From NCBI GenBank assembly GCA_965112735.1, contig OZ218953.1, forward strand, positions 3,968,001 to 4,032,000: DNA of 64,000 bases, written 5' to 3'. The notes under the pieces are model-generated. The model did not search any database. It saw nothing but the letters and a program-made list of their open reading frames with translations, and was not told the DNA's origin. Source of the DNA: Phaeosaccion multiseriatum. Lineage: Eukaryota > Protista > Ochrophyta, other classes. Positions 1 through 57,669 of the stretch are shown one piece after another. The position numbers and the translations under genes were made by a program. Numbering within the stretch: the first letter of the stretch is position 1; every line of letters begins with the position of its first letter.

Positions 1-765
<765 letters not shown>

Positions 766-1089
766 CAAGAGAGTTGGGGGAATCCTGGCTGGCACTCTTG
801 TTGCTTGGCCCTGAAGGTGCCACTGGCTGCCTGGGCCAGGTTGAGGGAATCTACAGCGAGATCAGCGGCCATGTCTTCGAGAAAGGAATGCTGCGAAACG
901 GAGTATCGTATCTGGATCGACTCCTTCGTGAAAGGTGCCTCGCAGTCATGGTGGCCGCTGCTGCCCCCCCCGGGGATGGAATATCTCTCTTTAACTTACA
1001 TCATTACGAGTAGGTCGGCAATAGAAATAACCTTACTCAACAGACTGGGTGTAGCTAGCAAATATCCAGACATTGAAGGAAGAAGCTAG

Positions 1090-2509
1090 CTAATGGGGGC
1101 AGGAATGAGGAGAGTGAAAGCCGCTGGGTGCTGCCGCCGCCTGCCTGTGCAGCGGTATCACCAGCTGCCGCTGCTGCCCTTCCCGCTCAGCAACACCCAG
1201 AAGCCTCTCTCCCGTTTTGGCGAGCAGTGCGAAGAATAGCACTCCACCCACCACGATGGCCGCACTCGTTACGGTCAGGTGCGCGGGTGTATCGGTGCTG
1301 CGGCTGCTCCAGGGCCGGACAACAATCAAGGCCCCCACCAGCTGGGCCAGATCGGTCACGTAGATGGCCGAGGCGAGGGTCAGGCGGTGGAAGTGACTGC
1401 CCACGAGGGCTCCCAGCGGGGCGCCCAGGACCACCACGGGCACGCAAACGACAAAGAAGCTCCAGGCGTCGCTGGCCACGCCCTCCATGCCAAACTCGCG
1501 GTAGGCGAAGCCAATCATGGTGTTTCCGGCCATGAGTAGCACGCTGGTCGGGGTGGCAATCTTCTCGGACACACGGAAGAGCAGCGTGAGGCAGGCGAAG
1601 GAGCAAATGTCCAGACCGCTGCCGCTCATGGCGCTGAAAATGCCACCCAAGAAGCCGAAGGCGAGCAGCACGAGCCCCCTCCACCAGTTGGCGGGGAGAT
1701 TGTAGGCGCGGCCTTGCCAGCAGGGGATGCCATCGAAGACTGCCCTGCCGTGCAGCTTGTTGAGCCAGTACAGGCTGGCGGCAAAGGCGGCCCAGATGCA
1801 CACAAAGTACATTTTGGAGTACGGGGCCGTGAGCTGGGGGGCCACATGCTCCAGACCGAACACGATGCCCGCAGCGCCCCCGAGGGTGCCGTACAGCAAG
1901 GCGCGGCTCTCGATGCGCACGCCCATGATGAGGATGGTGACGGACGCCGCCGTCATGCCGGCACTCTGCGGGCAGCGAGCGAGGGAGGGAGGGACGGAGG
2001 GAGAAGACCGCTGACATTAGCAACTGCACTGTTTGAGGGAACGAGCCCAGTAGCAGCGAGCAACACCGACGCTGGCTGTACCTGGATCATGTAGCTGAAG
2101 TCTCTTGCCGTGCCTGGCGCGATGCCAAAGAGCAGTGTCATGACGGGAAACGCCACCGCGGCCCCACCCTCGCTCGTGGCCCCCGCCACCATGGAGCCGA
2201 ACACCATGGTCACGGTCAGGTACCAATTGGGGATGTCCTTCTCGCCGGAGGTGTCCGAGAAGACGCTCCACACGCCGCCGTCGTCACGCTGGGTGGTGAA
2301 AATGTAGGCCCACCAACAGGCGTGGGCGATCACCGCAGGTAGGGACATGGCCAGGAGGCGCCGGTGTCGCGCTAACCACGATGCGTTTGGGTCGGCCTTC
2401 GCGTTCTTAACGTTCGTCTGCAGGCTTTGCCCCTCCCAGAAATACTTCACGCACCACGCCGCCACGGCCTCGTGGAGCCCACCCCCCCCCTCGGTCCAGC
2501 TGCTGCATC

Positions 2510-2560
<51 letters not shown>

Positions 2561-2582
2561 CAGCGCTGCCCTCTCTGTCCAT
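1090..2582 (-). CDS. TauE/SafE (sulfite exporter family) multi-pass membrane protein, 2 exons
   Basis: Exon 1 is 2582-2082 and exon 2 is 1965-1090, joined by GT-AG intron 2081-1966 to give MIQ|SAGMTAAS. Family-like motifs: TMVFGSMVAGATSEGGAAVAFPVMT, GGIFSAMSGSGLD, EKIATPTSVLLMAGNT, PVVVLGAPLG. Many hydrophobic helices. Confidence 0.85.
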
Positions 2583-3644
2583 ACTCGCTCTCGCTCGCAC
2601 TCCTCTTGGGTTGTTGAATCTTCCTCCACGGAAGCACTCGGCTTCATTCTTTCTGCCGGCACCTCATCACCGCCACCGTGCGATAGAAAGAAGAAGTCCT
2701 TAGCAATCCGCGCTTCGCCGCTCCGAGCCACACTCTTTCCCAGGTTGGTGTATTGTTGGGTTTCCCCTCCTCCCTCCTAAACAAGCAACCTTCTTGCTTG
2801 AAGAAGGACTGGCCCCCCTCGCCGCCCCTGTTGGTGGGCTAGTGCTAGCTAGTGTGCGAGGTTCGCGATTTCCCCCTGACCCCTCTGCCCCCCACCTCTC
2901 CTGCCTCTCCTCGCCTTCCTCTCTTCCCCAAGTTGCCCACGTCGCACGGAAGAAAGCCTGAGAAATCCTCCAACTCGGCTCCTAGCACACTCTGCTTGCG
3001 CGGGGGTGGGCACGCAAGCGTTGTCTCCGCCTTGTTTGCTTGTGGACGCCTCCCTGGTCCTTCTCTTGTCTCTATTGATTGCTGAGCACACGTTCCAAGC
3101 CAGTGCGTTGCAGAGCTTCCCTCTCTCTCCAAGCCTGAGAAATCCACTCAGCTCCTCCCGCACATTTTCGTACTGTTTTTTTATTCATTTTTAAATTTTT
3201 ATTCTTCTTTACATGCCTGCCAAGCCATTCGGGGCTCCGAAAAAGTTTCTTTACCTGCCTCCTGCCAAGCCATTTGTCTGCCACGGGTTTAATCCTCGAA
3301 CACGTCAGTTCGAAGCAAAGCAAGGGACGCAGTGAATGCCTGTATGCCTGAATGCCTGCGAATGCCTGATCTCCCGCGCGTGGATTGACCGCTGAAGACC
3401 CACAGCCAACCGGCGTCTGATTCCCCCCATAGCATGCGTGCAGAGACTGCCAATTTCAGGTGTCCGGGCTCCCCAACAACAATGTGGGTGGGCGAGTGGT
3501 TTATTAATTTTAATAAACACCTTAGCTGACGGCCCTGATGCACCGTACTGTTCCATGGCGAAGGATACCAAAAGTGCTACCGCGCCGGGTCATAATTGAT
3601 GACCCCTTTTTCCCCTACTTCGTCACCCGGCACCCCGTAGGTAC

Positions 3645-3803
3645 GATATGCTGCTGCTGCTGCTGTCCCAGCAACTGTTGAGGCTCCTGCTGTATCACCA
3701 ATTCATGCGGATGAGACCGGGATCGGTGGCCGAGGGGCTGGTTGTGCCGTTAGCTATAGCCGCTGCCTAGGGGACGGACGGGGTAGGGACGACAGTTGGT
3801 GAC

Positions 3804-3868
<65 letters not shown>

Positions 3869-4152
3869 TAGCAGCTAGCAGCAACAGTTGGTCATACAGC
3901 AGCAGTTGGTGATACAGCAGCGGCATTGGTTGCTGATATTAGTTACTTCTAGGCCTCACAGATGGCACCAAGGGGGCCTCTCTCTCTGCAGCAGCTGTTG
4001 GTGATGCAGGGGTAGAAGTTAATGATACAGCAGCGGAAGGAGCGACAACCACTGACGAAGTAAAGTAGTGTCCACCCCTCGGAACCCGTATGGCGTGGCG
4101 AGCAGCGGCAAGGTTCCATCACAGCCGCACTAGCTATCCGTAAGGTTCCATC
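3645..4152 (+). pseudogene. Degenerate inverted partial copy of the large low-complexity exon of the RAD18-like gene
   Basis: 3650-3785 aligns by eye to the reverse complement of ~17100-17240. 4076-4125 (ccctcggaacccgtatggcgtggcgagcagcggcaagg) matches the reverse complement of ~16650-16690. Confidence 0.85.
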
Positions 4153-8520
<4,368 letters not shown>

Positions 8521-42406: not shown

Positions 42407-45400
42407 ATGGAAGGGCAATCGGGGGGAGCAGAGGGCCTGCTGCGGCTACCCTCTCTTTTGGCACAGGAGGAGAAGCTGGCCACTCTCCGGGAAGCGGAGG
42501 ACCTCTTGCGCGTGCGTGAGACTGTCAGGGCACAGGAGGGGAAGCGGGCCACCCTCCGCTCCCTCTACCCAGAGGACTCCACCTTACTGCTGTTTAACCA
42601 CGCGACACTGATCAGACACGAGGGACAGCCATACGGCCTGCGGCTTGAGCAATATGACCAGCGCATATTGATGGTCGTGTGGGATGAACGTATGGAGAAC
42701 GTTCTCCAGTCGGTGCCGTCCCTCAGCGAAGCGGGATTCATCGTGGTGGACACTCTGGAGATGTCTCTCCTCGCAGTGGAGCAGATAACGACGGAAGCCA
42801 TGGAGAGGAGCACAGGAAGAGGGATGCGAGGAGTCATTGCGGTTGATATTGAGATTGGGGATAAGGGTGGGACGGGAGGTGCGCAGCGGGGCATTATCTC
42901 GCTCATTCAGATTTCTGCGGGGCAAGGAGTAGCATTTCTCTTCGATGTGCTAGCAGGGGGGGCTGCAATGATGGGTGCGCTGAAGCCTCTGCTGGAGAGT
43001 GATGACGTTGTAAAGGTTCTTCACGACTGCAGGCAAGACTGCGCTGCTCTGTCCTCACAGTTCCAAGTTGAGCTCGTTCGGGTCTTCGATTCCCAAGTGG
43101 CCGATATGGTCATAGGCGCAAGAGGAGGAGGAGGAGGAGGAGGAGGAGGAGGACGTTGGAGCAACAAAAGAGGACTGAATGCAGTTCTAGAAGACTACAC
43201 CGGCTGCATCAACCCCTACAAGGACCTTGTCGAGCACAGGTGCGTCGCTGTCGAATCTCACTCCTTCTTGACTACCCACACCCGCTCACATGTGCCTTCT
43301 TTTTGTCTTTTCCCACTCTCCCATTCCTCTTCAGACCTTTTTTCTGGAATCGCAGACCACTGAGCAAATCCATGATCTTGTATGCGGGAGGCGATGTGGC
43401 CTTTCTGGTCCAGTGCTATCACGTGATGCTCGAGAAGCTGGAAGACCAGCGCCAGCAGCAGCTGCAGCAGCAGCAGCAGGCGGAGGAGGAGGAGCCACCG
43501 GCGCAGCAGGGACGTGTGAAAGAGCCTTTGGAGGAGGTCTGGGACTACTCTATAGAGAATGTGCACCAGCATCGTCGGAAGATCCTCACCAGTGCTGCGG
43601 CCAAAGCCTTCGCTCTCGAGCTTCCCCTGAACCCCGAGCTCCTTGCAGAGTGCGGCTCGAAGAAGGGGTTTTACGCCTGCTTCACACGGTGGAGAGACGG
43701 CCTAGTGGCCCAGTCCACACAGGAGGGGGGAGGGGCTTTGCCTGCTGGGGAAGGCGAGGAAGACAGAGAGACTGTGCGGTGGTGGTGCGTTGTTCAGCCT
43801 GCGAGGGCATTGCAGATCCTCTTCAAGCGCAAATACGTGATTTCCAGGGGCAAATTGAACAATACGCTCGAGTGGAGACTAGCAGAAAGTGGTGCAGCGG
43901 GCGGAGGAGGAGCGCCTTCGCTCACTTCGACCTGGCGCGGGCAGCAGCAGCAGGAGGAGGAGCACCACCACCAGGGTGGGACTGATGGCCCCGGTGGAGC
44001 CAGGGCGAAGAATCGCCTAGGGCAGGAGGTGGGAAGGCAAGGGCCGAAATCTGAGCTCGAGGCCAACAAGGGGTCGGTCATCGTTGGTTCGGTGGGAGAC
44101 TGGGGCGATGTGAACTGGCAAAACCAGGTCATATTTGAGCCGGGCGTCAGGCATTTTCAAGACGTGACTGTGACGAATACGGGGAGCCCTTGCAGCTGGA
44201 ACAAGTGCCTCCCCACCCGTCCAGGTTCCTTGAAACTGTCCATCCGGAGCGGTGATGGCGTGGCGGAGGGTGAGGATGTTCAGTTGCCGGTCGTGCTGGG
44301 GCAGGGGCAGAGCATGACAGTACGGATGGAGTACGACGCCCGAGAAGACACTGCCCAAGGCATGTTTCGGTGCATGTTGCTTTTTCTCTTCTCACCCTCT
44401 GCCTCCTCCTCAGCCGTAGACGGTGAAGTAGCAGCAGCAGCGGGGGTGGGCTTTATGATCGGGCGCAGCATCTGCTTGAATGTCATCGACGAGGATGCGC
44501 ATTCCTTACTCAAGGGCGACGGAGGGGGCAAGGCCGGGCGAAAGAAGGCTCTCTTCCACCAACAGGGGGCTATTATCCCGGCAGGGAGTCGCAGGGAAGG
44601 GCGCGTCAAGCCCAAGTTCGTCCATAAGCTGTTGAAGTACCTGCCCGACGCTCAATGGCAAGATCAGATGCAGCTCGGAGGCAACGCCGCGGAGATGATG
44701 GCAGACATGGAGCTCAAAGCCTCCAACCACCCCGTCTTCTTCGAGCGGCTTCTCTGGCTGGAGGAGAGGCAGATGCAGTTCGATATGGCGGTGAGCACAG
44801 CAACAGAAAGAGCCGTCCGGTATCTGTCGAATCGATCCACCCATGGACCTACCCCTTTCTATTTCCCACTCCTCTCCGATCCCAAGCGGGTCTGCTCAAG
44901 TCTTACCCCCTATGGACCTCCCCCCCCTCCTTCCCTTCTCCTCGCGTGCCCCATGCCCTGTTCGCAATAGACTTTCGACGAGGTGGGTGTTACCCTGGCC
45001 CCGACCCCTAGCGGCAGGCTCTTCCGCCTCACGGTACCGGGCCTTGCAGAGGGGTGAGTGCCTACTCACGATCGTAGGGGAGGGTTGGAGGACGCACAGA
45101 GGCCTACACGAACATAGCAGGCTTGTTTGTTCTCTTGGTCGCTCGACTCATCATAAAGTGACCTTCTACTTCCCTTTCTTACTCCCTTTTACTGCCTTGA
45201 ACTACCCATCTACCTACCTACCTTTCCACGAACCCACGCCTCCTCTTTCGTGCCGAATGAATCTTCAGGCGCCCTTCTGTACTGCAAGATGACGTAGTCC
45301 TCGTCACCAAGGGCAGCGCCACCTTCGAGGGCATTGCCATCAACCTCCAGCGAGACTCCGTAGATCTCAAGTTCAACCGCAAGTTCCGTTACAGCCCCGG

Positions 45401-48400
45401 CGAGAAGGTGGACGTTCGCTTCCTCCTGCGACGCACAGAGTTTCGCCTGTGCCACCAGGGGCTGGCCAATGCGAGGAAGCTGCCCAGGTCCTGGCTCTTT
45501 CCTGAGCCTGGGGATGATGAGGTCACAGATGGCTCCGGAGGAATAGCAGCGGCAGACGGCCCCGTCGTAAGGCTTGAGGTGGACAGCGAGGGAGAGCTGC
45601 CAACGCTGGGCAGGCAGAGACTCAATCGTGAGCAGCAGAGAGCCGTGCGAGCCATCGCGGAGCGACGGCAAGTCCAAGTGCCCTACATACTGGTAAGTGA
45701 GGGGTATGTAGACGTTTCACTCTTGAACCCTGAGCCATCAAACTGCATCAAGATGGCAGCAACTCAGAGGCCCAGTCCCGTGCACTGCATGTATAACCAC
45801 CGCCCCCCTCCCCTCCCCTCCTCTCTTCTCCTGGACTGCCCGCGCCCCATGCCGCTTCAGTTCGGTCCCCCCGGCACCGGCAAGACAGTCACCCTCGTTG
45901 AAGCTGTGCTGCATGTGCTACAGAAGCGCCCCTCGGACAAGATCCTGCTATTGTGCCCCACCAATGCCGCTTGCGACCTCCTTGTGGAGCGGCTCAGCTC
46001 CAGCGATGCCGCCTTGGTGTCGCCCAAGACAGACCTGCTGAGGGTGATGGCCTTCTCGAGAGGCGTCAGAACGGTGTCTTCAGTAGTGCACAACTTCTGC
46101 AAGACGTCTGTCGATGGGGAGCAGTTCATATCTCCTTCGCTGGCCGACATTAAGAGTTTCCAGGTTGTCGTTTCTACGCTCACCTCAGCGGGCAAGCTCT
46201 TCAATCTGGGACTGCCTAGGTAAGGCATGTGTATGTGTGCGTGCATGTCCATGCGCGTGTGTTCATGCGTGCGTGTCGATGCGTACGCATGTGTCGTATA
46301 CCATTCCTTATCGTAGAGCATCATCTTTCGTTCCCCCTTCTCCTGCGTCCCTCACCCCCTCCCTTCTCCTCCCTCCCTGACACCCTCCAAAACCACTTGG
46401 GCAGGGGCTACTTTGGCCTGATTGCAGTGGACGAGGCGGGCCAAGCGACGGAGCCGCAGATTTTGGCCGCCGTCGGGGCCATGGGGGGCAAGGCAACACA
46501 GCTCGTTCTGGCCGGCGATCACAAACAACTTTCACCCATCGTGTTCTCTGCCCTTGCGCAGGAGTACGGCCTCGCCAACTCCTATCTCGAGCGACTCATG
46601 GGAAGGGCGGTGTACGCCAAGGGGGAGGGGGAGGAGGAGGAGGGCAGTGAGGGCGAGCGAGGCGAGCGAGTCGAGCGAGTCGAGCGAGCAGGAGGCTACA
46701 ACCCTACGATGGTGACGAAGCTTCTCCACAACTACCGCTCACACCCGGCCATCCTCGAGGTGCCCAATGAACTGTTTTATGAGAGCGAGCTCGTGCCCAG
46801 CGCGCAGCACCAAGTCAGCCACTGCCTTGACCAGTGGGAGGCCCTTCCGCAGCCGGGTGTGCCGCTCTTGTTCCACGGCATCAATGGGCTGGATCAGAAG
46901 GACAGTAGCTCGCCCTCCTGGTTCAACCCGGACGAGGTGTGTGCGGTGGCGGAGCACGTTGTGCAAATGATACAGTGCGAGGGCGTCAAGGAAGGCGACA
47001 TCGGGGTCATAACGTGAGTGCGTGAGTGAGTGAATGTGTGAAGTGCGTGAGTCACTGGGTGAGTAAGTGAGTGAGTGAGTGGGTGAGTAAGTGAGTGAGT
47101 GAGTGGGTGAGTGGGTGAGTGGGTGAGTGGAGCGTCACGGGGGTGCTACTGGAGGCTTGTCAAGGGATGGAGAATATTCGGAATCAAGAAAGGGGGTAGG
47201 GGAGGGCACTTTGTTCGATGGGTGTGTTTCGTTTGCCGTTCAACAAGACTGCTCTCGCTCACCTCTGTCTTACTGCTTGTGGTTGATCTCTCTGAACACT
47301 CCCCCGCCTGCCCCGCTTCTTTCATTCACGACTGCACTCTTTGCCGATGATACCATACATGTCGCGCGTCTTTCTCCATCATCTCTCTTCCCCTCTCTCA
47401 CCCGACCGGACTTGTGTGCGTGTTGTCGCCTTTCCGCCTCTGTGCACCCTCTCTGACTGCCTCGCCTTGCCTTGCCTGGCAGCCCCTACGGGAAGCAGAG
47501 GCAGAAGATCAAGACTCTGCTGCGGGCCAAGGGCATTGCAGAGGGACACAGTAGCCGCGACTCAGACGAAGGGGAAGGCTCAGGTGTTAAGGTGGGCAGC
47601 GTGGAGGAATTCCAAGGACAAGAGAGGAAGGTGAGACAGAACGGGAGGAAGTGGCAGAGGGGACAGGAGGGGAAAGGAAGGGAGAGGCGATGACCTGAAA
47701 GGAGAGAAGAGGAGGGAAGGGAGAGGAGGGAAAGGAGACGAGAGGAGAGGAGAGGAGACGAAGTTGGAGAGGACGGGGCAGCGGCGAGTGGGAGGCCTCC
47801 AAGGGCAAGCCGAGGAGGAACGGACCTCAGACCCCTGTTCGCTCCGCTGCTCCCTGCTTGGCTCGTCATCAATACCCTGCCCTCGCTCACCTCGTCCTGG
47901 GTCTTCTCTCCCTCCCTCCCTCCCTCCCTCCCCTTTTGTGCGTGTCTCAGGTGATTATCATCTCCACCGTCCGCTCTACGCACTCAGTGGTGGACTTCGA
48001 CACGGAACACAGTCTGGGCTTTGTGTCCAACCCCAAGAGGTGAGAAGAGGCGAGTTGAGTTGAGCCGCTGATGGGAGGGAGGGAGGGTGGGAGAGAGAGC
48101 GAGGCGGTAGCGTCTAATACGAGCATGTGCAGTGCTTTGACGGGACTTGTTTTAGAGTGACATACGCGCACTAGGTGGACAGAGGGTCGGCACATAGACA
48201 CAGAGAAGGAACAGTCACCCAACGCCGTTAGCTCAGTGTACCCCTTCCCGTCGATCTCTTGTCGATCTCTTGCTTTGCTGTGCAATGACAATGACGATTG
48301 CAATGGAATAATCGCAGGTTCAATGTCGCCATCACCAGAGCTCAGGCCCTCCTCATCGTCGTGGGGTCGCCGGAGGTCCTCGCTGTGGACCCTTGCTGGG

Positions 48401-48825
48401 GGAAGCTGCTTTCCTTCTGTGTGCAGCGGGGCTGCTATAAGGGAGTTGAGCTACCCCCAACCGTTGTAGTGCAAGCGGGAATCCAGGGGGGGGAAGCAGG
48501 TGTGGTATCATCAGAAGCTGCAGGGGAGCAGGGTAGGGAAGGAGGGAGCGAGGAGCTATCGAGGGTGGAGAGTTCGACGCTGTTGATAGCGAGGTTGCTG
48601 GGAGGGCTGATGGGCGAGCCGTCTTCGATAGAGGGGCTTTTTGCTGAGATGAGTGGAGGAGGAGGAGGAGGAGGAGGAGGAGGAGGAGGAGGAGGAGGAG
48701 GAGGAGGAGAAGGAGGAGGAGGAGTAGACGAAACAGAAGGGGAGGATGACGATGATGATGAGGAGGGGGAGAAAGGGGATGAGGAGGTGGGAGAGGAGGA
48801 ATGGGAAGTCGTCCAAGTGCCGTAG
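42407..48825 (+). CDS. MOV10: DEDDy 3'-5' exonuclease (EXD1/Egalitarian-like) fused to MOV10/SDE3/Armitage-type SF1 RNA helicase, 9 exons
   Basis: Exonuclease: IAVDIE, LLESDDVVKVLHDCRQD, VFDSQVA, WNRRPL...YAGGDV. Helicase: LLWLEE, VPGLAEGRPSV, FGPPGTGKTVTLVEA, DEAGQATEP, LAGDHKQL, NYRSHPAIL, SPSWFN, ITPYGKQ, VGSVEEFQGQE, STVRS, LGFVSNPKRFNVAITRA. The start codon is uncertain. Confidence 0.9.
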
Positions 48826-49402: not shown

Positions 49403-52400
49403 TCACGCTTCTGGAGGGAGGGCTGCATCGGGCACTCCATCCTGGGGGCCCTCCTCTTCCCCCTCTTCCCCCTCTTCCCCCTCTTCCCCCTCTTCCCCCT
49501 CTTCCCCCTCTTCCCCCCCGTCGACGCTGAGACTGGCGCTCTCCCCGGCACCCTCGGTGACAGCAGAGAACCCCGCCTCCCCCTTCTCTTCCTCATCCTC
49601 CACCCCAGCCTCAGCTGCTGCAGGTGCCTCAGGAGGCCCGTCAGGCTCAAGCCCTGCAGCCGCAGCCTCAGCAGAGGTGTCGCAAGCAGCGGCACCACCA
49701 GTCTCCGCACCACCAGTCTCCGCAGCAGCAGTCTCAGCAGCAGCAGCCTCAGCAGCACTAGCCTCAGCAGCACTAGCCTCAGCACCAGCCTCAGCAGCAG
49801 CAGCATCAGTCTCCTCAGCAGCAGCAGCAGCCTCCGCAGCAGCAGCAGCGTCAGCAGCAGCAGCAGCAGCCTTAGCCTGTGTCGCAGCTTCGGCCGACGC
49901 CCTTCTCCTCTCTGTCGCGGCCGCCACCGCCGCCGCTCGCTTTGCCGCTGCCGCCTCCGCCGCCAGCCTCACCTTCTCCTTGTCCTCATAAATGCCCAGT
50001 CCGATCATCTCCCTCTGCAACAGTGAGCTCATCTGTAGCCACAAGGCATCCGCTCCCGCCCCTCCCCCAGCCTCACGCTGCCCCCCCTCTGCTTGGCCCT
50101 GCTGCTGCGCCATCCCCCCCGGGTCCATTCCAAACATGCTGGCGAAGCCCTTGCAAATGTACGGAATGACCTTCTCCGCCATCTGCTCGCACACAAGCTT
50201 GGCCACCTCAGAAGGGTTCGGACGGCTCCCTTCTCTCCCGCTGCTCGGCCTTCGGCCCGTAGAGCCCACACCTCCGACATGGGCTTCATTGCTACCACTA
50301 CTACTACTGCTACTACTGCTACCCCCGGCAGAAAACAGCCGCATTGCTACTTTCTTGTACTCAGCCAAGGCCTTGAGAACATCCCGAAAGCACTGCTCCA
50401 ATGCCTTTCGTAATCGAAACTCCAGTGAGAGAAGGGCGCACTCTCGCAGGTGATTGAATGACGTCAGCAGCAAGTTCACAAAGCGGCTCAGAAGCGGGTA
50501 CGCCAGGAGAGACGAAGGCGGATGCATCCCCCTCTCACTCCCACTTCCGCTGCCTCCTTCGTCATCCTTGCTCTTGTCCTTTGCCCCTGTGCCACCGTGG
50601 TCGCTGCTGCTGCTGTTGCTGCCTTGATTCTGGTAAAGCGGCAGCACCAACCCTCCCGATTGGGTGGTGACGACACCTCCTGCCCCCACCTCCTCCCCTC
50701 CGCCGTCCCCTCCCCTCGAGGTAGGGTTCATCAAACCCCCTCGCAAGTACACCAACGCCTCCACGACTTCACTGGAGGCCAGCCCCCACTGCCCGGCGGC
50801 CAGGTTCCACACGGCCCCCTCAAAAATGGGCGTCAAGAGCCCCCTGAAATCGCACGACAGACGTCCCATGCTGGCCCCAAAGAACATGCTTTGATCCATA
50901 ACGCTCATGAGGGAGGCCCCATCTGCCAGCAGGGGAAGATGGACGCGCAGCATGTGTAAGAAGCCTTCGATGCGCCTTGCCAGCCAGCTCGATAAGACCG
51001 CTGCGCTACGGCGATTGCTCGCCTCGATAGCTGCCGCGGCTTCCAGGCCTCCCTTGCTGCCCCCCCCCACTCCTTCTCCAACTTTTCCCTTCTCCCGTGC
51101 CCCTTTCCTCAGGCCCTGGCCCGATGAGGTCACCGTGGGAGATGAATAGTCCATGAAGATTGCCTTGAACTGCGTGGCAATGTCGAACCAATGGGTCCTG
51201 CTCTTCTCGATGAGGTCCATGAGGACAAGCTTGGTGGCGCTACTGCTCCTCGACCCTGCTGCTGTCTTGGCAGAGTACAAGTCTGCTTCAATAGATGGGG
51301 AGAGAGAGGGAGTGAGGGGGAAATCCTGGGAAAAACGGTCCCCATCCACACACAATTGGATGCATGTACCGCTCTGTCACACCGCAATATCATCATCTCG
51401 TGTACACACGCACAGCGCGCACTTACGCACGCCCGTACAAAAGAGAAAGGAGAAGGACAACTTTCCACCTCTGTCTGTACCTGCAGATTGCGAGCCTCCC
51501 AACACCTGCTCTAACCAGACATCTCTCGCCTCCAGAAACTCCACCTGGAGCATTGTTTCCAGCATAGGGGCGTACGCCTGTCGCGTATCCCTCGTAGTAG
51601 TCGAGACCCCTCCTTCTCCATCTCCTGTCGGAGCTGCCAGCGTCTTCTTCTTCCCCCCCCCCCGGCTGGCGATAGCCTGTTGCTGGCGTTCCAGCTCCAC
51701 CAATTGAAGTCGCCGCAGACAGGATACCAGCTGCAGACAAGCAGCGAGTTGGATGGGGTCTGTGCGCAGCTGGGCAAGCATCTTCTCCCGCATGCCCGCC
51801 GCACATGCCCAGACCTCCTTCGCGATCATTCGCACCACCTCGGGCACCTCCCCGTTTCTCTCCTCCGCCCCCCCACCTCTTCGTCCTCCGACCCCTCTAT
51901 GCCCGACCGCGGACCCCGCTATATCTTCTGCTCCTCCCCCTTCTCCTCCTCCTGCCGCCGCCGCTACTGCTTCCGCTGCTGCCGCCGCAGAAGCTGCTGC
52001 TTTGGCTCTCGTTGACATGACTTGGTGGCGCCGGACGAGAGCATTGCAGAACTGCGCGATGCTCAGCGCCTCCTCGTACATGGCGTTTCGGACACAGGCA
52101 TCCATAAGCTGGGGCACCTCCAGCAGCTCCACGAGCTGTGCGTGGTGGGCAAGGGTCCGTTGGTTGCGCTTATGGCTCGCCAATAGCTCCCCTGCCTCCA
52201 CTTGGAACTTCCCCAGAGACCCTTCAAGGGGACAGAAAGAAGAGAGCAGGGTTATCAAAGGTCCTTACGTCCTCCTCGGCAAACCCTTTCATTCTCCGTA
52301 AGAGCCGAAGCCTTCCATCTTCTCCTGTCCCTGCTCTCTCACCTGAGATGTTCTCGACCCCTGCCACAAGCCCGTCGATGCAGCCGTCCATTCTCGCGCC

Positions 52401-52658
52401 CTCGGCCTTGACATGCCTCACACAGTCGTGGTTCTCGATAAAGACATCGTAGTGATCTAGGGAGAGTGTTTGGAGGGCCTTGTCGACCTTCTGAGCCTCC
52501 TCCTGCAGCCGCGCCGGCTCGTGCTTCAGGCGGTCCAGCCCCAGGGAGGCAAGGTTATGATAATCGGTTGCTCGATCACTGGTGCTTCTTTGCGCAGAGG
52601 AGAACTCCGCTCCTCCGACTCTTCCTATAGCCTCCTCGGTGGGCGGAGGAGACATCAT
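49403..52658 (-). CDS. COG8: Conserved oligomeric Golgi complex subunit 8 (Dor1 family), 3 exons
   Basis: LDRLKHEPARL...YDVFIENHDC; LVELLEVPQLMDACVRNAMYEEAL; FLEARDVW; IEKSRTHWFDIATQFKAIF; YPLLSRFVN..LTSFNHLREC. Ala/Glu-rich C-terminal extension. Confidence 0.9.
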
Positions 52659-52791
52659 TGGTTTTGTTGTTTGTTTTGTCTTGTTGCTCCACTTCGACCT
52701 CTCCATTATGTCAATGGCCCGGTCCCATGCAATACAGTTTCGTTCCACACAACAAAAAACAAAAAACAAGAAGCTACTCAGTAATATAGTG

Positions 52792-57669
<4,878 letters not shown>

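Follow-up and report, generated by a model that had tools for sequence, protein, structure and literature searches.

Predicted fusion of an Egalitarian/EXD1-type exonuclease to a MOV10-type helicase in a single gene of the alga Phaeosaccion multiseriatum

We analysed a stretch of 64,000 nucleotides from the ochrophyte alga Phaeosaccion multiseriatum (contig OZ218953.1, positions 3,968,001 to 4,032,000 of the forward strand), hereafter the window, all positions being counted from its first letter. The subject of this report is a gene on the plus strand of the window, at 42407-48825, whose predicted product joins a DEDDy exonuclease domain to a MOV10-type helicase. Three-frame translation resolves the locus into one protein-coding gene of nine exons and ~1,500 codons, with introns that are GT-AG in eight of eight cases. 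Its exons, together with the first intron, which interrupts the exonuclease domain, are as follows.

42407-43239, plus strand: exon 1; ATG, ~125-residue lineage-specific N-terminal region, followed by the part of the exonuclease domain that holds ExoI and ExoII
43240-43334, plus strand: intron 1; 95 nt, GT..AG, inside the exonuclease domain
43335-44790, plus strand: exon 2; 1,456 nt, open; ExoIII, post-exonuclease helical segment, low-complexity linkers, beta-rich and probably Ig-like region, probable MOV10 helical segment
44971-45053, plus strand: exon 3; beginning of the MOV10 beta-barrel (1B) domain, including V-P-G-L-A-E
45269-45692, plus strand: exon 4; remainder of the beta-barrel and linker to the helicase core
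45861-46219, plus strand: exon 5; RecA1 with motif I G-P-P-G-T-G-K-T (45864-45887) and motif Ia; AAA_11 at 2.3e-13
46405-47013, plus strand: exon 6; motif II D-E-A-G-Q (46430-46444), motif III G-D-H-K-Q-L, motif IV N-Y-R-S-H-P, start of RecA2
47483-47630, plus strand: exon 7; RecA2, first half of motif V
47951-48039, plus strand: exon 8; RecA2, second half of motif V (V-I-I-I-S-T-V-R-S)
48318-48825, plus strand: exon 9; motif VI F-N-V-A-I-T-R-A, Gly-rich and acidic low-complexity tail, stop TAG at 48823-48825

The case for a fusion is carried by exon 2. Its frame is open from 43072 to 44967, the exon itself running to an L-L-W-L-E-E-R-Q block with the donor at 44791, and because ExoIII and the MOV10 N-terminal region thereby share one stop-free exon, the fusion is independent of splice prediction. 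On the near side of this exon, excision of intron 1 brings position 129 of the Pfam exonuclease profile next to position 141, and Egalitarian residue 170 next to residue 180; retention of the intron would end the frame at 43361-43363. The first ATG of exon 1 comes after an in-frame stop. Pfam and structure-sequence searches were made exon by exon, and the Pfam profile positions carry on without a break across all eight junctions, a continuity far beyond chance. A preliminary description of this DNA had taken the locus for a genuine single-gene fusion and not a gene-model artefact, and the open exon 2, together with three collinear uninterrupted open reading frames (ORFs) from other sources described below, bears this out. 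The coordinates it had given for ExoI, ExoII, the intron at 43240-43334, ExoIII and the ~1.45-kb exon all proved correct on the sequence, and the profile search it had proposed, run on the single exons, matched DNA_pol_A_exo1, MOV-10_beta-barrel, AAA_11 and AAA_12.

Is this arrangement confined to one alga? A phmmer search with exon 1 against 1.84 billion representative proteins gave 733 matches; the window's own protein was absent among the matches listed. Pfam scans of the 20 longest matches listed, which take in every listed match above 660 residues, revealed the fusion architecture in two among the best 150 of the 733 exonuclease-domain representatives. The first, P0008 (Joint Genome Institute (JGI) sample 3300045300, 1,600 residues), carries DCD, DNA_pol_A_exo1, MOV-10_beta-barrel, AAA_11 and AAA_12; the second, P0118 (JGI 3300017128, contig Ga0186112_100298, 1,235 residues), carries the last four of these and is a single ORF (379-4086) on a 4,520-nt contig that has non-coding flanks on both sides and looks like a transcript. 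A word search seeded with P0118 added P0151 (1,221 residues), a EukProt Trinity transcript marked complete, with the same fusion domains.

Exons 1-9 are strictly collinear with all three proteins, both in BLASTP searches of each exon and in TBLASTN searches against the window. Exon 2 follows P0008 over residues 580-688 and 952-966, its spacing to exon 3 is exactly matched in the relatives, and the residues that meet at exon junctions are consecutive (in P0008: 577/580, 992/994, 1236/1239, 1427/1429, 1468/1469 and 1497/1499). Identity to the three relatives is 36-47% for the larger exons; individual values are 49% for exon 4 (to P0008 994-1077), 44-46% for exon 6 and 52-66% for exon 8. TBLASTN of the three relatives against the window found no second copy of the fusion and no homologous upstream exon. 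There are differences, too: P0008 has its extra N-terminal DCD domain, unlike the window protein, which in turn has ~125 N-terminal residues and repeat-rich linkers without counterpart in P0008, P0118 or P0151. None of the three bears a functional name, P0008 being filed as "hypothetical protein". The window protein belongs to a small set of eukaryotic proteins built on this plan, none of them studied so far.

The exonuclease part is divided between exons 1 and 2, with its catalytic motifs at the following positions.

42845-42853, plus strand: ExoI, D-I-E; two catalytic acidic residues, aligned with the D-x-E of P0118, P0151 and P0008
43022-43039, plus strand: ExoII, H-D-C-R-Q-D; fits the block H-D-C-R-x-D, which relatives and Egalitarian share unchanged
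43381-43395, plus strand: ExoIII, Y-A-G-G-D; Tyr and last Asp of DEDDy, aligned with Y-A-A-G-D of Egalitarian and Y-A-A-Q-D of the fusion relatives

DNA_pol_A_exo1 (PF01612) matches exon 1 at 7.9e-16 (58.8 bits against a cutoff of 23.6), residues 143-266 corresponding to profile positions 22-129, and the start of exon 2 takes up positions 141-173 (18.4 bits). In an alignment of the fusion proteins with other relatives, where the window's two pieces were kept as separate rows, all five DEDDy residues (D, E, D, Y, D) are intact, and they are invariant in P0008, P0118 and P0151. The best solved relatives are, in this order, Drosophila Egalitarian (5.7e-16), a CCHC RNase D-like protein, EXD1 and Rrp6. 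Exon 1 matches residues 53-170 of Egalitarian (9uju) and the start of exon 2 residues 180-203, and both Egalitarian (PDB 9uju, 9rvy) and EXD1 (PDB 5fiq) have the H-D-C-R-x-D and Y-A-x-G-D blocks in common with the window exonuclease. The Pfam domain WH_Egal, which the animal proteins P0007, P0119 and P0087 carry, matched none of the exons at E values up to 1; with these winged-helix domains missing, the window protein is not an Egalitarian orthologue. Behind the exonuclease domain lies a short conserved helical block, common to some short relatives, which may correspond to the helical domain described next to the exonuclease domain of Egalitarian (PMC13186709). Taken together, sequence comparison confirms this part as a predicted Egalitarian/EXD1-type DEDDy 3'-5' exonuclease domain. 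Domains of the Egalitarian type are also found with other partners in public proteins (P0120, P0142, P0046, P0086, P0055, P0001 and P0008), the partners across that set being an MTPAP-like nucleotidyltransferase, a SpoIIIAA-like AAA ATPase and, before one exonuclease-MOV10 fusion, a DCD domain. A further partner in this set is a tandem second exonuclease domain (Corallochytrium Clim_evm50s25).

From ExoIII to the MOV10 helical block, exon 2 consists of predicted helices, two low-complexity stretches with a (CAG)n array among them, and a beta-rich region, and two of its segments are candidate MOV10 domains.

44068-44484, plus strand: beta-rich region, probably MOV10 Ig-like; nine strands in a low-confidence model (predicted local distance difference test, pLDDT, 50-67)
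44704-44784, plus strand: probable MOV10 helical segment with the L-L-W-L-E-E-R-Q block; Mov-10_helical positions 38-64, E 0.058, below cutoff

The beta-rich region is consistent, on weak evidence, with the MOV10 Ig-like domain: the aligned segments of P0008 and P0118 match MOV-10_Ig-like weakly (E 0.001 and 0.033), and the first three Atlas fold rows obtained with the weak model of exon 2 are MOV10-family clusters, at template modelling (TM) scores of only ~0.3. The L-L-W-L-E-E-R-Q block is kept in P0008, P0118 and P0151. Downstream, the MOV-10_beta-barrel profile passes from exon 3 (positions 3-27) into exon 4 (positions 29-88); exon 4 by itself reaches 26.4 bits (cutoff 23.6), and the three relatives 60-63 bits. 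AAA_11 matches exons 5 and 6, and AAA_12 extends over exon 6 (positions 10-115), exon 7 (117-152), exon 8 (154-174) and exon 9 (177-194). Helicase motifs I, Ia, II, III, IV, V and VI are all present, with motif V divided between exons 7 and 8, and they align with UPF1 structures (1.2e-15 for exon 6); the resemblance to UPF1 does not extend beyond the core. The Atlas clusters nearest to P0118 are named MOV-10, mov-10-B.1 and armi. Pfam detected neither the MOV-10_N domain nor the cysteine-histidine-rich (CH) zinc-knuckle domain of UPF1 in the window exons. The sequence thus identifies, and the profile matches confirm, a putative MOV10-type, Upf1-like superfamily 1 (SF1) helicase with a complete core, and there is no sign of decay in the active sites. 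Both family assignments of the preliminary description—Egalitarian/EXD1-type for the nuclease, by its best solved relatives, and MOV10-type for the helicase, by the beta-barrel, the SF1 motifs and the MOV10/Armitage clusters—are upheld, as is its view that the DEDDy residues and helicase motifs look intact, now by alignment to relatives and to UPF1 structures.

How rare is the combination? We found no description of an exonuclease-MOV10 architecture in the literature. Word searches with P0118 and with a three-protein alignment yielded P0151 as the sole further fusion and missed P0008, so their blanks say little; a word search with exon 2, whose length window excludes full-length fusions, and an Atlas feature search returned nothing. 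Pattern scans with the exonuclease-to-barrel alignment found a MOV10 part in none of the best 80 JGI metagenome loci, no relative in IMG/VR, and, among 80 prokaryotic genome loci, RNase D-like proteins only, none with this exonuclease and a MOV10-like part. As P0118's own contig was not in the metagenome scan, protist transcriptomes are poorly covered, and it is within this scope that we call the architecture rare. The novelty which the preliminary description had cautiously raised survives in part: P0008, P0118 and P0151 share the architecture, which is therefore not unique, while as an uncharacterised one it stands, none of its members being functionally named and no paper having been found. 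A quick tree places the four fusions, by their exonuclease domains, within one 13-row subtree (Shimodaira-Hasegawa-like approximate likelihood ratio test, SH-aLRT, 87), which they share with nine short proteins that may be fragments. Such a grouping would be compatible with a single origin of the fusion.

What might this protein do? We regard as the best explanation, and as a fairly probable one, a fused RNA enzyme that unwinds and degrades, or unwinds and trims, its substrate. MOV10 and UPF1 are 5'-3' RNA helicases. Like them, the helicase part would bind single-stranded RNA and move 5'-3' on ATP, opening duplexes or stripping off proteins. On a duplex, the displaced strand would be freed 3' end first at the fork, so that a tethered 3'-5' exonuclease would be well placed to digest or trim it in the 3'-5' direction. 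The cellular role could lie in RNA silencing, in the control of retroelement or viral RNA, or in RNA decay, and sequence cannot tell which of these applies; the part in small-RNA biogenesis or in the silencing of transposons that had been suggested for the locus is pure inference. HELZ2 provides a precedent for helicase domains joined in one chain to a 3'-5' exoribonuclease. Another precedent comes from worms, where ERI-6/7, a MOV10 homologue, and the 3'-5' exonuclease ERI-1 belong to the same small interfering RNA (siRNA) pathway (PMC3213143).

Several points weigh against a fused unwind-and-degrade or unwind-and-trim enzyme. EXD1 is an inactive adaptor. Egalitarian works as an RNA-binding adaptor, and its putative catalytic residues, though conserved, can be dispensed with and lie ~15 Å from the bound RNA (PMC13186709). 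As neither protein is known as a nuclease, conserved residues are no proof of activity. Moreover, substrate (RNA or DNA), polarity and the coupling of both activities are all inferred; the public runs that hold the locus, four runs of one sample, are DNA only, containing the introns and showing no splice joints; and the structure model of exon 2, built from a four-row alignment, has a mean pLDDT of 41, so that its secondary-structure pattern and weak fold rows were what we used. The contigs from these DNA runs reproduce the sequence with zero differences, and the joints reported in the runs fall in purine-rich repeats.

The adaptor precedents point to a second possibility, namely that the fusion is real and its exonuclease domain non-catalytic, serving as an RNA-binding or recruiting module which hands RNAs or partners to the helicase. 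We consider this conceivable, if doubtful. Egalitarian and EXD1 are, after all, among the best solved relatives, Egalitarian holds RNA by basic patches away from its catalytic residues (PMC13186709), and since animal Egalitarian-like matches also keep H-D-C-R-x-D and Y-A-A-G-D, conservation alone is undecisive. Yet the five DEDDy residues are intact in four fusions that are only 35-47% identical, and none of the four has the winged-helix RNA-binding domains of Egalitarian.

Alternatively, the protein could be a DNA enzyme for repair, replication or recombination, akin to WRN or to Dna2, which combines a nuclease with an SF1B helicase. SF1B Upf1-like helicases can unwind DNA in vitro, and PF01612 covers DNA exonucleases too. 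In addition, residues 132-320 of P0118, its exonuclease domain, match the C-terminal part of the PADLOC helicase models BrxHI/BrxHII of bacteriophage exclusion (BREX) systems (6e-10), which hints that helicase-DEDDy fusions may exist in bacterial BREX systems as well. Against this, the kin of both parts are RNA-associated—Egalitarian, EXD1, an RNase D-like protein and Rrp6 for the exonuclease, MOV10, Armitage and UPF1 for the helicase—and we judge a DNA enzyme unlikely. Still less credible is that the locus yields two separate products, whether through a promoter or polyadenylation site within the gene or through a splice variant that escaped notice: the public runs being DNA only and the long low-complexity linkers of exon 2, which could hide such signals, leave room for it, but without ExoIII, encoded in one exon with the MOV10 N-terminal region, the exonuclease domain would be incomplete, three other sources (one a Trinity transcript) show the same order in one uninterrupted ORF, and the gene forms a compact unit between its neighbours.

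This compactness follows from the flanks: ~330 bp upstream of the gene begins a candidate divergent ORF without a Pfam match, and the convergent downstream neighbour (49403-52258, minus strand) is a COG8/Dor1 Golgi-complex gene. Further on, an ORF at 52582-55386 on the plus strand matches TSNAXIP1_N (translin-associated factor X-interacting; 6.8e-07). Within the gene, three coding repeats stand out.

43122-43153, plus strand: coding trinucleotide array; Gly run in the ExoII-ExoIII interval
~43442-43503, plus strand: coding (CAG)n array; Gln/Glu run right behind ExoIII
48655-48800, plus strand: coding (GGA)n array; long Gly/acidic C-terminal tail

Breaks in the short-read contigs of the public runs occur only at coding arrays, precisely the first two. 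That the (CAG)n array might mark a misassembly was considered and rejected, the homology to P0008 crossing it in the same order. Intron 6 opens (47014-47130) within a (GTGA)n array, which provides successive GT donors, and alternative 5' splice sites, mostly frame-breaking, are conceivable there. Elsewhere in the window, a 4.4-kb (ACAG)n microsatellite at 4153-8520 (99% pure, 1,092 copies) gives rise to a spurious 1,533-residue ORF on the minus strand.

Why would a fused RNA enzyme of this kind matter? MOV10/Armitage/SDE3 helicases and DEDD exonucleases share siRNA and PIWI-interacting RNA (piRNA) pathways, and their physical cooperation is poorly understood; the closest animal relatives of the exonuclease domain, Egalitarian and EXD1, appear to have lost catalysis. 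A covalent fusion with intact catalytic residues in several distant protists would offer a compact system for the coupling of 5'-3' unwinding to 3'-5' trimming, and would link the exonuclease and MOV10 families through guilt by association. In its boldest form, which we put forward as tentative and rather less than probable, the proposal is that the fusion represents a conserved protist family of single-chain 'unwind-and-trim' small-RNA silencing enzymes, a Rosetta-stone link between Egalitarian/EXD1-type exonucleases and MOV10/Armitage helicases across eukaryotes. If true, the intact fusion would represent the active, ancestral form of a module that survives in animals solely as an adaptor. 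Parallels already known are EXD1 with the helicase-like TDRD12, ERI-1 with ERI-6/7, and trimmers beside Armitage/MOV10L1. Should the protein merely be a general RNA-decay factor, it would extend the list of helicase-nuclease fusions only modestly.

How, then, does the window protein compare with known systems? On the exonuclease side, EXD1 is a small adaptor protein, and neither it nor Egalitarian is fused to a helicase, unlike the window protein; Egalitarian instead carries winged-helix/LOTUS-like domains, and its binding partners include BicD and dynein light chain (PMC13186709). On the helicase side, MOV10, MOV10L1, Armitage, SDE3 and ERI-6/7 have, like the window protein, a MOV-10 beta-barrel before an Upf1-like SF1 core with all motifs. 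To our knowledge, the known members of this group are without a nuclease domain, and they use nucleases as separate proteins (for example, ERI-1 with ERI-6/7), in contrast to the fusion described here. Among proteins that are themselves fused, the most similar logic is that of HELZ2, a single-chain helicase and 3'-5' exoribonuclease with Upf1-like helicase domains. Its nuclease is an RNB domain (RNase II/R) between two helicase cores and is non-homologous to the DEDDy nuclease of the window protein; Pfam finds no RNB match in the window exons, and one helicase core only. For HELZ2, whose helicase domains flank the RNB exoribonuclease domain, a mode of action has been proposed in which structured RNA is first unwound and then degraded (bioRxiv 10.1101/2022.03.26.485892).

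Two further systems combine the same kinds of activity from different parts. In WRN, an N-terminal DEDDy exonuclease of the PF01612 type is fused to a helicase, which is, unlike the SF1 helicase of the window, a RecQ helicase of superfamily 2 (SF2) that has 3'-5' polarity and acts on DNA. In PADLOC, the helicase exons find their best matches in Mokosh (MkoA 5.1e-16, MkoC 2.2e-09), MkoA being the best match of exon 5. Mokosh systems pair or fuse such a helicase with a nuclease, but they are prokaryotic and their nuclease is of the phospholipase D (PLD) type, unlike that of the window fusion. To the known helicase-nuclease fusions, HELZ2, WRN and Mokosh, the window gene adds a combination that is itself rare and unstudied.

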